64,000 nucleotides of DNA from Rebecca billardiae RCC1528 (taxonomy: Eukaryota; Protista; Haptophyta). The notes below the pieces were generated by a model that saw only the letters and a program-made list of their open reading frames with translations, had not been told where the DNA came from and made no database searches. The stretch lies in contig OZ251234.1 in NCBI GenBank assembly GCA_965240325.2, positions 682,001 to 746,000 on the forward strand. Direction: 5' to 3'. Each line of letters starts with the position of its first letter. Position 1 is the stretch's first letter. Of the stretch, positions 27,544 through 49,364 are shown one piece after another. Position numbers and translations under genes: made by a program.

Positions 27544-29990
27544 GGACCGCGTTCCGCGGTCCTTTTCCGTAGAACCAACGCAGTTGGGGGCCCGCGGCGC
27601 AGTGGTTGAGAATGAGACTGACGAGTCGACCAGTTGCACGCGTGAGCGCCGAAAAAACGACACTTTGGCAGTGATAGTCACAGTCGCCGCCTCGGTCAGC
27701 ATGCCGCTGCCGCCGGCAGCAGCGGCAGCGGGAGCGTGGCAGCGGGTCTACCACCTTCTGCGTTACACGCTGCGTCGTGCGCGCCAGGTGGCAGGTGTCC
27801 CCTGTCTGCCGCGCGGACTAGGCAGCGGTCGGCGAGCGCAGAGGTGAGAAGGAAGGCGCGCACGCATCGTGAGAGCTTCACGGCAGCTTGCCCACGCGCT
27901 TCACTCGTAGGCGGTGAGGTTGCGTGCGCACGCCTTCTGTACCCGTACACGCGATCGCAGCGTGAGCCACTCCAGCCTGCCTGCGCATCGCGGGCCGAGC
28001 CGCCGGCGCCTCGTCTCCTGAATCCTCGTTCACGAGGACAGCACGTGTATGTATCCGTGGCGCGCTCGCTGCCGATGGCGGCTCCCCGTGTCGAGGGCGT
28101 TTGGCTGGAGCCGCATCCAGGGCATATATCGTCACGGTCCCACCCGATGCTGACGCTGAGGTGGCGCGCTTGCCGAAGGCAGCAGCATTGGCTGATGCCT
28201 TCTGCATTGGCCACCTCTGCGCGACCGCGCGTTCACGCTGCCGGCGCGCGGGCGGCGTCGCTTGGTGGGCACCTGCCTTGGGTTTTGTCGTTCGTTCTCA
28301 GCGACGGTTGGGTCGATTGACATGCCGATTGGATTGGGGCATTGCGAATCGGCTTCGCAATGCCCCGTTCCGCTCGGATCGGCGCGGGCGTCAGCCATGC
28401 GGCAGCGCGAGTGACAAAACCGACATTTCATACGCATGTCGTTTTTTCATACGCTCACGGGTACTCACCCGTGCAACGGGTCAGTCAGTCAGTCCGAGTC
28501 AGAAAGACAGTTCAGCCACTCTGAGAGGGAGAGTCAGACCCACCGAGTCTCGGACTCGGCGCGAGTATGCGGGCGCGCACGGCCAAGGGTGGCATGGGAC
28601 ACCAGCGGACGGGCCGCGCGGGGAAGCGGGGCGGCGCGCTCGCAGGGCGAGAGGCGCGGACGGGCCGCGCGGGGAAGCGGGGCGGCGGCGCGCGCAGGGC
28701 GAGAGGGCGAGAGGCGCCGCGCGGCGCCGGGCCGGCGCGTGCGCGCGTGCGGGCGCACCTGCTTCAGCTTGCAAGGTGCTCGCGCTGCGCCATGCGCTCG
28801 ATCGACGAAGGGCCGCTGGTCGCGAGCCGGCGCGTGCGCGCGAGCGGGCGCACCTGCTTGAGGTACTCGCCCTGCGCCATGCGCTCGACGACGGGCCGCT
28901 GGTCGCTCAGCCGGCACGCCTCGTGCCGGCAGAGCGAGAGCGCGCGCCACTGCAGACTGCTGGCCCGCCGCGGCCTGCCGGCTGCGCAGCCGCGCACCGA
29001 GACCGACCGAGCGGAGCTCGGGGCGGTGGAACGAGGCGAGCGGCGCGTCGCGCCTGCCGCCGCGCGTGCGCGCCTGCTCCACCGCGCCGCCGTGCTCGCC
29101 CGCCGCCTCCTCCGCCGCGTCGGCCTCGAAGACGGCGGCTGCCAGCGGCAGGCTGAGCTGCGCGCGGCTCACTCACACTGTCTGTGAGTCCTCACGCTGC
29201 TGCCGGACCTCCGCGCCGCCGTCGACCGAGTTGAGGAGGAGCTCGGGCTCGGCGTCGAGGCGCGAGCTCGCGTGCTCGAGCTCGCCCTTCAGCCGCGCGA
29301 GCTCCGGGCGCATCCGGCTCATCAGCTCTGCCGCGCCGCTCGCTCGGCGGCGGCGGGCGGCGCGCTCTGCTCCGGTCGGCGAGCGACGAGCTCGCGTGCT
29401 CCGGACTCGGCTCGCCCTTGCGCGCTGCTCCTCGAGTGACGAACGCGCCCGCGGGCAGGTTGTTGCCCGTCGCCCCCGCCGCGATCTCGCCGCCCCCGCC
29501 GCGATCTCGTCGCGCATGTGTCCGTGGCGCGCGCCTGCGAGGTGACAGGCGGGCCGCGAGCTCAGCCTCGGGGAGAGCGGAGCGAGGGCGAGACGCGCGG
29601 CCTGCGAGGCGACAGGCGCGCTCGGGGAGAGCATTTTACTATTCACAGTTAGAAGTGATCAAGTTTCCCGATCCCTTGCCTTGCCGTTTTTATCGGTTGG
29701 CGGTTGGCGGCAATCTCATACTTAAAATCGCGCTCGTAACGAACCGTTACACTAATGTCACGTCCAGCTGACGTCCGGATCGCACTTTACTTAAGGGAAT
29801 CAGCTGGGCGCGGTTTTTTTCGGCCTAATAGACCTCTCTATGCGATCTCAAAAACTCGAAACTCGGTCTCCGCCAGCCCTAAAAATCGCCCCCCGTCCCT
29901 TTTTTCTTGATCAAAGATCTTTTTGAAACGTGGTTCGGGCCCGCTGGTGCGGGCTCCACGCTGCGCGCTCCGCCCTGCACCGCGGGCCAT
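27544..29990 (-). mobile_element. Helitron2/Helentron-like element A1 with a captured coiled-coil gene fragment
   Basis: The 5' end ATGGCCCGCGGTG is at 29990 (-). The inverted sub-TIR is at 27589-27597, followed by CAAC-GCA-GTTG and the terminal hairpin GGACCGCG-TTC-CGCGGTCC at 27544-27562. The cargo at ~28600-29600 reads ELMSRMRPELARLKGELEHASSRL on the minus strand. Confidence 0.75.
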
Positions 29991-30042
29991 AAAGATTAGC
30001 AGAGACAGAAATAGAGTCTGAAGTACAGGCAATCGCGGGCAA

Positions 30043-46876: not shown

Positions 46877-47164
46877 CGAGGAGGGATCCGACACTCCGGA
46901 CCCTTGATCCGACCTTAGAATCATCATCATCACTACATCTCTTGCTGTTCCCGGGGACGTAGCTGGGGGAGTTGACTGACAGATTGCACGAAAAACCGTT
47001 GGCGGCCCCAATTGGGATCTGACTAAACTGTATTCCTCGGGATACCTATTGGAAGGCCATCAACCTTGTAAGAATCACCGGACTTCGCGTGTCCTACCGG
47101 AAAACTCGCTCCGCTCGCATGCTTGTTCTTACAGAACAACCAATGCGAGCGGGGCTCGCGATTA

Positions 47165-49364
47165 ATGGCGCACGGCCCCCCCGAAAGGTCTGAGCGTGAG
47201 CGAAAGCCGGGGGGGGCGGCGCACGTGCTCCGCAAAATCAAAAAAGAGGACGCGCAGGATTTGGGGGATTTTTGTAGGTGGATTTAGGTGTGAAATCCGC
47301 ATTTGACTCGATATCGCTGCTCATGATTGCGTTTGTACTGCTCCTTAATCCTTGGATAGTAAGTAATAGAAGAAATCGGAATCAAATAGGACGAAGTCAT
47401 CTCTGATACCTTTCTGATAGTCAAGATTCATATGGTATTGCGCGGGTAGCTTGAATCGACGTTCCCGCGCGCCCTTGTATCATACGGTTATCAAGCTACA
47501 CTTGCTGATATACTTTTGGTCATCTACTGATACGACGTCAATGCGGGTGGCAATCCATTAAGTTGGGTCGGCTTTTATGTCGCTTGAATTAAAGTATTAT
47601 GCCGGCATATGAAGTCATGAACCGTCAGCTTCTTGATCAGTGGCGGGTTTAAGCCCCTTGATTACCCTTGATTCATACACGCGAGATGTCATTGCGCGGG
47701 ATCTTTGATTATTCTTTGAAGCGAAACGCCATTTTTTTAAACTGCCGCACTTAGGGACAAGGGTGGTCGAAAAATACCCAGGTGCTTGGCGGGTGCGCGA
47801 CGCGGCTCGCGCAGCTGGGCGTGCCCGCGCTGCAGCTCGGCGGGCTCTCGGCGGCGGACGCGGAGGCGGTGGTGCGAGGCCGGCTCGGCGCGGCGGGGCG
47901 CACGCTCGACGCGCGGCAGGCCGAGGCGGTGCGCTCGGCACTCGGAGAGGCGCCGAGCGCGCTGCACGCCGTGCTGCTCGCCGACGCGGCGGCGGAGTGG
48001 CGCTCGGGCGAGCCGCCGCCCGCGCACCTGCCCGCCGACGCGCGCGCCGCCGTCGCCGCCACCTTCGAGCGCGTCGAGCGGCTGCACGGCGCGATGCTCG
48101 TGCGGCGCGCTTGCGGCGCCATCTGCGCGTCGCGCCGCGGCCTCTCGAGTGCCGAGCTGGAGGAGGCTCGCTCTCTCTGCACGAGGACGTGCTGGCGTCC
48201 GTGTTCGAGTTCTGGGTGCCGGCGGTGGTGCGGCTGCCCGTGTGGCTCGCCGTGCGCGACGCGCTCGGCTCGCTGCTCGCCGGCGGCGACGGCCCTTTGC
48301 GCTGGTACCACCGTCATCAGGTGGCCGAGGCGGCGGCGGCACGATACGCCCGCGCGGCCGACGCGCACGCGCTCGCGGATTTCTGGGCTGGCACGTGGGC
48401 GGGCGAGGCCGCCAAACCGCTGCGCCACCCGAAGGCCACCGGCGGCGAGGACGGGCGGCGGCGCGTCGCGCCGCAGCCCCTGCTCCTCTCTGCCGCGCGC
48501 CTCGGCCTTCGCCGGCCGCGACGCCGCCGTGCTCAATGTGCGCCGGTGCGAGGAGCTAGTGCAAGCGCTGCTCGCGGCCGGGCGCGCGGCCGACGCGGCG
48601 CGCGAGCTCACCGACGCGGGCGCGGACGGGTGGGAGGCGCGCGCGCGGCACGGCCTCGAGACCGAGTACGTGCGCGACCTCGCGGACACGGCCGCGGCGG
48701 CGGCGAGCCGGGCGCGGCCGCGCGCGCGGAGGCTGCGGCGCTGCGCGCGCGCGTCGCGGACTGGCTGCAGCTTGCGCGGCTGAGCGCCTCCGCCGCCGCC
48801 ACGGCGCCGGGCCGCTGCCTCGCGCTGTGCCTCGAGCAGCCGGTTGGCTCGGCGCCGCACGAGTCCGCGTGGGCGCGGCGCGCGCCGCGCGCCGCGCACC
48901 CGGCCGCCCGCGCCAGCTGGGCGCGCGGGCGCGAGCACTGCGCGCGAGCGCCCCTGCTCGCCGCGCGCGGGCCGTGCGAGGCTGTGCTGCTAGCGCACGC
49001 CGGCTGGGTGGAGGCGGTCGCACTCTCGGCCGACGGGCGCGTCGCGGCGAGCGCGGGCGACGACAGCGACGCGGTCGTGCGGCTGTGGGCGTGGGACACC
49101 GCCGAGTCAGAGTGCGTGCGCGCGCTCGAGGGGCACGCCGGCTGCGTGAAGACTGAATGAAGAGCCGCGACACGGCGCAGCCCCCCGAGGCCGTCGATCG
49201 CGTCGATTACTCGCGCCCGCGCCTCCTGCACGGCGACGCGCCCGGGGCGCGCGCATCGTGATTCGGCGGTGAAGAACGCGACAACTACTAGACTCACAAC
49301 TGTACCAGGGCCGTGCGCCCTCAACTTCGTTGTTTACTACCCGAAGATCGGCGTAGCCGATCAT
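47165..49364 (+). mobile_element. Helitron2/Helentron-like element B2 carrying a NACHT-WD40 gene fragment
   Basis: 5' ATGGCGCACGGCCC is at 47165, a perfect inverted copy at 49308-49319, then CAAC-TTC-GTTG and the terminal hairpin GATCGGC-GTA-GCCGATC-AT ending at 49364, followed by (TA)n. The 5' ~350 bp is shared with B1. Confidence 0.8.
47780..49160 (+). pseudogene. Frameshifted internal fragment of a NACHT/WD40 (NWD/TEP1-like) gene
   Basis: FERVERLHGAMLVRRACGAICASRRGLSSAELE, SLHEDVLASVFEFWVPAVVRLP and WD40 repeats (HAGWVEAVALSADGRVAASAGDD..VRLW; LEGHAGCV) lie in alternating frames. Both ends are missing. Confidence 0.75.

Follow-up and report, generated by a model that had tools for sequence, protein, structure and literature searches.

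What kind of mobile element carries a short repeat at its very 5' terminus and an inverted copy of that repeat some distance inside the opposite end? The question is raised by a 64,000-nucleotide stretch of DNA (hereafter the window) from the haptophyte Rebecca billardiae RCC1528 (GenBank assembly GCA_965240325.2, contig OZ251234.1, positions 682,001 to 746,000 of the forward strand), in which five complete elements of two subfamilies (A1, A2 and A3; B1 and B2) lie between 27.5 and 49.4 kb together with two solo A-type 3' ends. The answer that we consider probable, judging from the sequence of their ends and junctions, is that A and B are non-autonomous members of two sister families of HLE2, the Helitron2/Helentron type of rolling-circle elements, in a haptophyte genome. 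Helitron-like elements reshape genomes through the copying of host sequence, and the mechanism of the HLE2 branch is still poorly understood.

The copies and their parts, where ATIR stands for asymmetric terminal inverted repeat, are as follows:
27543-29988, minus strand: A1, complete A-type element, 2446 bp; 5' ATIR 29978-29988, 5' hairpin 29938-29988, 3' ATIR 27589-27599 (1 mismatch), mini-hairpin 27576-27586, terminal hairpin 27545-27561
30042-31506, minus strand: A2, complete A-type element, 1465 bp, oriented like A1 and 53 bp downstream of it; 5' ATIR 31496-31506, 5' hairpin 31456-31506, 3' ATIR 30090-30100, terminal hairpin 30044-30060
40622-42257, plus strand: A3, complete A-type element, 1636 bp, inserted into a (TATC)n-like tract; 5' ATIR 40622-40632, 5' hairpin 40622-40671, 3' ATIR 42201-42211, mini-hairpin 42214-42224 (with a compensatory G..C pair), terminal hairpin 42239-42255
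37605-39478, minus strand: B1, complete B-type element, 1874 bp, with the 3' end of a non-LTR (long terminal repeat) retrotransposon on one side and the (AT)n tail of the latter on the other; 5' ATIR 39467-39478, 5' hairpin 39419-39477, 3' ATIR 37650-37661, mini-hairpin 37637-37647, terminal hairpin 37607-37623
47167-49364, plus strand: B2, complete B-type element, 2198 bp; 5' ATIR 47167-47178, 5' hairpin 47168-47222, 3' ATIR 49308-49319, mini-hairpin 49322-49332, terminal hairpin 49346-49362
37064-37135, plus strand: solo A-type 3' end, with an ATIR variant, a mini-hairpin and a terminal hairpin with 1 mismatch
37265-37395, minus strand: solo A-type 3' region, ~130 bp homologous to the 3' region of A2

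The original prediction, made from the letters alone, had recognized the five complete copies and their division into two subfamilies, with every motif within 1-2 nt of the place found here and in numbers far above chance, and had missed the two solo 3' ends. The A 5' 30-mer has three exact occurrences in the window (0 expected), the A terminal hairpin five (0.04 expected), the B terminal hairpin two (0.02 expected) and the A sub-terminal repeat with its mini-hairpin five (0 expected). A covariance model of the 3' end run with no filters, together with nhmmer profiles of both ends, returned exactly seven 3' and five 5' ends in the 64 kb; for the 5' ends a profile was used, as the hairpins of A and B are out of register when aligned. 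In 5/5 cases the 5' end is paired with a 3' end of the same subfamily, 1.5-2.4 kb further downstream and in matching orientation, which answers the question of pairing and orientation that had been put forward for checking. No 5' ends matching the variant repeats of the two solo 3' ends were found in the window.

The ATIR is 11 nt long in A and 12 nt in B and starts 0-2 nt from the inferred 5' end, and the 5' terminus has a perfect inverted match of 9-12 nt in the sub-3' region (9 in A1, which has one mismatch in the 3' copy). In all five copies the 3' ATIR stops 45-47 nt short of the element end and is followed by two hairpins. When folded as single-stranded DNA, the 5' repeat of every copy pairs with a partner ~40 nt downstream to give a ~50-nt 5' hairpin (-19.6 to -23.5 kcal/mol, z-scores of -1.8 to -3.9) that uses the whole repeat in both families. 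The original prediction had not noticed this hairpin, which strengthens the Helitron2 assignment since it is the second defining feature of that class (PMC3627910). The stretch past its distal arm is weakly like the 3' repeat plus mini-hairpin in direct orientation (nhmmer E = 0.25), a likeness to be expected if the 5' repeat is the pairing partner of both. The 3' terminal hairpin, with a stem of 7-8 bp and a GAA or GTA loop, forms in the folds of the B copies and A2, while the 4-bp mini-hairpin forms in those of B, A1 and A3. The mini-hairpin has TGC, TAC or TTC as its loop, and the proposed 'double GNA-triloop terminator' thus shrinks to a GNA loop in the terminal hairpin only. Decay of the mini-hairpin, suggested for A2 and A3, is real in A2, but A3 displays a compensatory swap from C-G to G-C.

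When the seven 3' ends are aligned, 92.7% of cells are paired, versus 17-48% in a control with the partners slid. Three pairs of the terminal stem are double-compensatory between A and B, and compensatory changes separate the two in the terminal repeat as well; these are few independent events, yet all in one direction. Adjacent A and B elements with compensatory changes in both repeat and terminator stem therefore amount to a natural mutagenesis experiment, from which it can be argued that a 5' end needs a sub-3' repeat that matches it.

Pairwise comparisons revealed conserved 5' stretches of 145-260 bp between A copies and of ~185 bp between B1 and B2, which also share an internal block of 80 bp, and conserved 3' regions of 55-80 bp, the remaining interiors being unrelated. 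The claim that the interiors are all different is thus mostly right, but not for the shared 5' stretches and the B block. The first 40 nt are identical in the three A copies and the following 60 nt are variable; conservation is therefore higher at the termini than around them. The window has four occurrences of a 14-nt palindromic motif, TAACGAACCGTYAC (0.23 expected), all of them within elements and in either orientation; those in the A copies are located 227-265 nt from the 5' end, at the limit of the conserved 5' region:
29737-29750, plus strand: TAACGAACCGTYAC
31266-31279, plus strand: TAACGAACCGTYAC
38777-38790, minus strand: TAACGAACCGTYAC
40874-40887, plus strand: TAACGAACCGTYAC

Two side observations concern A2. 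A 271-bp miniature inverted-repeat transposable element (MITE) is nested in it at 30125-30395, with ~33-bp terminal inverted repeats (CAAGGGGCTTACAAAATACC...) and a 7-bp duplication (CTCCGCC); the solo A-type 3' region at 37265-37395 serves as the empty-site reference for this MITE, the site at ~37350-37366 being without insert. Just 5' of A2 (31520-31965), a short motif, CTAAGAAAC(C/T)G(A/G)GACT, spotted by eye only, recurs about five times.

Where are the elements inserted? The tetranucleotide TNAT, which has a background of 0.7% per position, lies directly 5' of all five complete copies, as TTAT in four and TAAT in one:
29989-29992, minus strand: TTAT, 5' of A1
31507-31510, minus strand: TNAT, 5' of A2
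40618-40621, plus strand: TNAT, 5' of A3
39479-39482, minus strand: TNAT, 5' of B1
47163-47166, plus strand: TAAT, 5' of B2

The 3' terminal letters are TCAT in 5/7 ends and TCCT in 2/7, and the presumed cut sites at the two junctions therefore follow like tetranucleotides. The base 3' of the insertion is a T in 1/5 copies only, i.e. the 'T^T' target of HLE2 is matched loosely. No direct repeat is consistent across the flanks of the five copies, and two partial paralogous empty sites are likewise without duplication, in agreement with the original observation that no target-site duplication is evident. The joined flanks of A2 (CTTAT + TGCCCGCGATTGCCTGTA) occur as an exact 23-mer at 31982-32004 (plus strand). 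For B1, a paralogue of the adjoining retrotransposon 3' end, at 42436-42632 (42545-42632 compared), runs directly into (AT)n, and so does the DNA past the 3' end of B1 itself. Both fit a precise insertion without duplication.

How closely do these features follow those of described elements? Helitron2 was defined by ATIRs whose 5' copy takes part in a 5' hairpin and whose 3' copy precedes a 3' hairpin, and by the absence of duplication; its non-autonomous copies keep ~200 bp of the 5' end and ~50 bp of the 3' end (Bao and Jurka 2013, PMC3627910). Canonical HLE2 has repeats of 12-16 nt, a right repeat followed by a stem-loop, and a T-T target (HELIANO, PMC11417382). All the HLE2 structural features that can be checked on the window (ATIR of 8-16 nt with its 5' copy 0-2 nt from the terminus, sub-terminal 3' repeat, 5' hairpin, no target-site duplication) are present, and the Helitron2/Helentron-like class of the original prediction has passed every structural test that could be run there.

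FoHeli1/2 of Fusarium oxysporum (Chellapan et al. 2016, PMC5148889) have a 12-bp repeat whose 3' copy is 38-51 bp away from the end, as well as 5' hairpins with a GAA loop, and are inserted between TNAT and T. They are thus similar to the A and B elements in their ~12-nt ATIR, in the position of its 3' copy (45-47 nt from the end here), in having hairpins at both termini and in inserting right after TNAT without target-site duplication. However, the GAA triloop is in the 5' terminal hairpin of FoHeli1/2 and in the 3' terminal hairpin here, the 5' hairpin is ~50 nt long here instead of short, and two 3' hairpins are found here downstream of the repeat. FoHeli starts with TCAG and ends with ATATTTT, whereas A and B elements start with GG (or T-GG) and end with TCAT or TCCT, and FoHeli copies encode RepHel, whereas the haptophyte elements are known here without a RepHel copy. 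With such ends already described in a fungus, the terminator does not depart from known Helitron2 ends.

The Chlamydomonas reinhardtii Helitron2 elements (Helitron-1N1_CRe, CRe-1/2/3; PMC3627910) resemble A and B in an ATIR that starts 0-2 bp from the 5' end and is part of a 5' hairpin, a 3' ATIR upstream of a 3' hairpin, conserved stretches of ~200 bp (5') and ~50 bp (3') in non-autonomous copies, insertion after T-rich sequence without duplication, 5'-truncated copies and compensatory changes between sister families. They differ in that their 3' ATIR is 20-30 bp from the end (45-47 nt here) and their target is TTTT (TNAT here). HINE/DINE-1 elements (Thomas et al. 2014, PMC4067079) share sub-terminal inverted repeats (12-15 bp, the 3' one 38-60 bp short of the end), a palindrome on the 3' side, a T-rich target and an association with microsatellites, but the latter are inside HINEs and just beyond the 3' end here, at least one of them being a retroelement tail. 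Helentron status hinges on an endonuclease (AP-endonuclease) domain in the transposase, whereas A and B are known here from non-autonomous copies. Helitron1 is a poorer match: it has a 5' TC, a 3' CTRR and a single 3' hairpin and inserts between A and T, whereas A and B begin with GG..., finish with ...TCAT or ...TCCT and carry inverted repeats. Given their close similarity to Helitron2 families already described, A and B are a known kind of element and a new example in haptophytes, not a new kind. No published report of HLE2 in haptophytes was found in the literature searched, whose coverage is incomplete and does not include Repbase.

By analogy with Helitrons, IS91 and IS608, a scenario for the movement of these elements can be proposed. 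A RepHel protein (HUH nuclease plus Pif1-type helicase) from an autonomous copy elsewhere would nick the top strand at the left junction, just 3' of TNAT, and unwinding would proceed 5' to 3' until the 3' repeat and hairpins, folded in the displaced single strand, act as a stop signal and the strand is cut after TCAT. The ends would then be joined to form a circle, whose TCAT|GG junction would restore a site like that at the left junction, and the circle would insert 3' of TNAT in single-stranded A/T-rich target DNA. Foreign interiors might arise from end bypass or template switching, and solo 3' ends from 5'-truncated (one-ended) events. The A and B families would each require their own matching repeat, which would explain why the two co-vary. 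TNAT^GG and TCAT^ are concrete substrates on which the start and stop of an HLE2 transposase could be tested, and the two end profiles can be used as search models in the annotation of haptophyte genomes.

The immediate neighbourhood of B1 and B2 bears on both the age of the elements and their boundaries:
39480 to ~40600-40617, minus strand: 5'-truncated non-LTR retrotransposon, whose 3' end ...CGTCGTTA adjoins the 5' end of B1
42436-42632, plus strand: short copy (188 bp) of the retrotransposon 3' end, 98% identical to it, tailed by (AT)4.5 and bearing a 7-bp target duplication (TCAGGCG)
37408-37604: module and (AT)n array 3' of B1, about 170-200 bp, with a 90% identical copy 3' of B2 (49365-49664)

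The open reading frame (ORF) of the truncated retrotransposon (39607-40617, minus strand) has a GC content at third codon positions (GC3) of 0.93 and no Pfam match, and a word-indexed homology search returned nothing, but a full HMMER search identified 278 relatives. It corresponds to a C-terminal domain that lies, in long relatives, downstream of reverse transcriptase and RNase H. Alignment of this domain uncovered an invariant Asp and Lys and a PD...EVK motif, a PD...(D/E)xK-like pattern that resembles that of the restriction-like endonucleases of some non-LTR elements; no solved structure in the PDB was matched in sequence and profile searches. The short copy reveals what follows ...CGTCGTTA where the B element is absent, and a related retrotransposon 3' end (~58480-58545, plus strand) is found directly before an (AT)54 array at 58546. 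At least some of the (AT)n arrays are therefore retrotransposon tails, and B1, which sits between the retrotransposon and its tail, must be younger than a copy 98% identical to its paralogue. This is the only hint that the family is 'active', as the original prediction had it.

Several observations weigh against the HLE2 assignment. The two empty-site comparisons are short or one-sided, and the exact termini are ambiguous by 1-2 nt (GG... after TNAT, or T-GG... after TTA/TAA). Five of the seven 3' ends adjoin A/T-rich simple repeats, pure (AT)n at three of them, resembling the local retrotransposon tails. This contact would be partly explained by insertion at array boundaries: pure (AT)n contains no TNAT, so the first TNAT would be found at the boundary of the array, and insertion there would put the 3' end against it. 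B1 and B2 have ~200 bp in common past their supposed 3' ends, which makes the true 3' boundary of B uncertain. Their common stretch beyond the 3' hairpins terminates at the identical base in both. This module could stem from read-through (end bypass) that began in a shared source, from repeated insertions at the tail of a single retroelement family, from a small retroelement on the opposite strand with an (AT)n tail, or from retroelements that target B ends. Only five complete copies and two solo ends are known, all within 22 kb. Finally, a Pfam scan of 30 window ORFs, which included all those with coding-like GC3, found no Rep, helicase or DUF6570 domain, whereas the RepHel transposase of the HLE2 clade combines a Rep (Y2) with a Pif1-like helicase and DUF6570. 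The proposed search for an autonomous copy was thus negative as far as the window goes, and the description of the family as 'HUH-mobilized' had anticipated an enzyme that these ORFs do not encode.

Could another machinery account for the same ends? That the lack of RepHel among the 30 ORFs points to a different HUH enzyme performing the same single-strand, hairpin-guided copy-and-paste, either a helicase-less Y1 Rep as in Replitrons or an undescribed haptophyte Rep, appears unlikely. It is in keeping with the report of Replitron-like proteins in two haptophytes (Craig 2023, PMC10288648) and with the like tetranucleotides before both cut sites and the sub-terminal hairpins at both ends, which fit the logic of IS200/IS605. 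Replitrons (PMC10288648) are indeed also eukaryotic HUH copy-and-paste elements of algae with a right-end hairpin, orientation-specific insertion and non-autonomous copies, but they have a Y1 Rep without helicase and need short direct terminal repeats, with no asymmetric or sub-terminal inverted ones. The A and B termini, in contrast, have the inverted geometry of HLE2 with no terminal direct repeat longer than 2 nt, and match in detail FoHeli1/2, which encode RepHel. In their working logic, IS200/IS605 (IS608) and IS91 also resemble A and B: both ends have sub-terminal hairpins and are cleaved 3' of a tetranucleotide, insertion takes place 3' of a specific tetranucleotide and no duplication arises. 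They are, however, prokaryotic, with other enzymes and sizes. A composite scenario, which we likewise hold to be improbable, would have an undescribed IS608-like haptophyte HUH enzyme cut after T-N-A/C-T at both junctions, guided by the repeat and hairpins, and would in addition have (AT)n-tailed retrotransposons land or prime by preference at the A and B 3' ends, which would explain the recurrent junctions between 3' ends and (AT)n as well as the B1/B2 module.

The presence in the same region of an (AT)n-tailed retrotransposon that has a 7-bp target duplication, the A/T-rich simple repeats after 5/7 3' ends and the two copies without 5' ends might suggest that A and B are passengers of a local non-LTR retrotransposon, in the manner of short interspersed nuclear elements (SINEs), with its reverse transcriptase reading the 3' stem-loop and (AT)n/(ATCT)n being retrotransposition tails. 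This is very unlikely, since target-primed reverse transcription gives no sequence-specific 5' junctions whereas the five precise 5' ends all follow TNAT, and the co-varying inverted repeat and the 5' hairpin would have no role in such a mechanism. Moreover, no duplications surround any copy plus its tail, A1 and A2 are without a simple-repeat tail, the 3' ends have nothing in common with the retrotransposon 3' untranslated region (UTR), B1 splits the retrotransposon/tail junction, which means that the array pre-existed, and there is no tRNA, 5S or 7SL signal of the sort borne by SINEs that depend on long interspersed nuclear elements. Least credible of all are cut-and-paste, MITE-like elements with imperfect inverted repeats, or non-mobile segmental duplicates: inverted repeats are present and the window is rich in duplications, but every copy has its 3' repeat 45-47 nt inside the end, target-site duplications are missing, and sharp, identical boundaries enclose unrelated interiors in five unrelated contexts.

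If A and B belong to HLE2, what do they carry? The interior of B2 contains a frameshifted, NWD1-like fragment with sub-threshold Pfam matches to a winged-helix helix-turn-helix (HTH) domain (E = 3.6e-4) and WD40 (E = 1.3e-4), which are in different frames but in the order seen in NACHT-WD40 proteins; a word-indexed homology search with this interior returned nothing. That of B1 is 84-86% identical in three blocks to another part of the window (5534-6747), and the other interiors gave no matches. Capture of host sequence, typical of Helitrons, is therefore plausible, but 'gene-capturing', the term used originally, says more than two sub-threshold matches and one 85% paralogue can bear. Searches further afield gave no match to the A 5' end in metagenome contigs, to the A 3' end in viral contigs or to the generic A/B 3' pattern in metagenome contigs and 185,579 bacterial and archaeal genomes; in viral contigs this pattern had one chance match (L010, 4.5 bits with the model). 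The 3' covariance model likewise returned nothing on five loci (~35 kb) of Pavlovales sp. CCMP2436 and of Logan assemblies.

The window as a whole has a GC content of 56-77% and contains long (AT)n and (ATCT)n microsatellites, a 22-bp satellite and, in a Pfam scan of its ORFs, a Copia-type reverse transcriptase among ordinary eukaryotic genes. One of the latter is an intronless PEX7 gene (49865-50902, minus strand), with best protein matches in Pavlovales sp. CCMP2436 (60%) and Diacronema lutheri (57%); a look-up of the identical protein found no record. Because of the microsatellites, the Copia reverse transcriptase and PEX7, the window is eukaryotic, and a bacterial reading in terms of integron cassettes, REP elements or insertion sequences was dropped. 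No tRNA genes or Rfam families were found in the 64 kb. B2 and its trailing module stop ~200 bp downstream of the PEX7 stop codon (49365-49864), which places B2 in or beside the PEX7 3' UTR.

Other repeats populate the window. Foldback-like elements at 7231-8346 and 45885-46828 have inverted arms of 324-406 nt that are 97-99% complementary and 296 nt apart, with an extra copy of the arm at 2672-3027. The 22-bp satellite, GGTACTGCTGCGCGCATGGTAT, forms an array at 42777-45075 in both orientations, within which a ~900-bp block is duplicated (42815-43704 versus 44385-45266). Near-identical (94-100%) segmental repeats, direct and inverted, pair 21421-22163 with 26370-27152, 14386-15213 with 17546-18373, 11270-11886 with 13796-14383, and 55134-55440 with 57475-57781. 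The last pair flanks the ORF of the Copia-type reverse transcriptase on both sides and may represent its LTRs.

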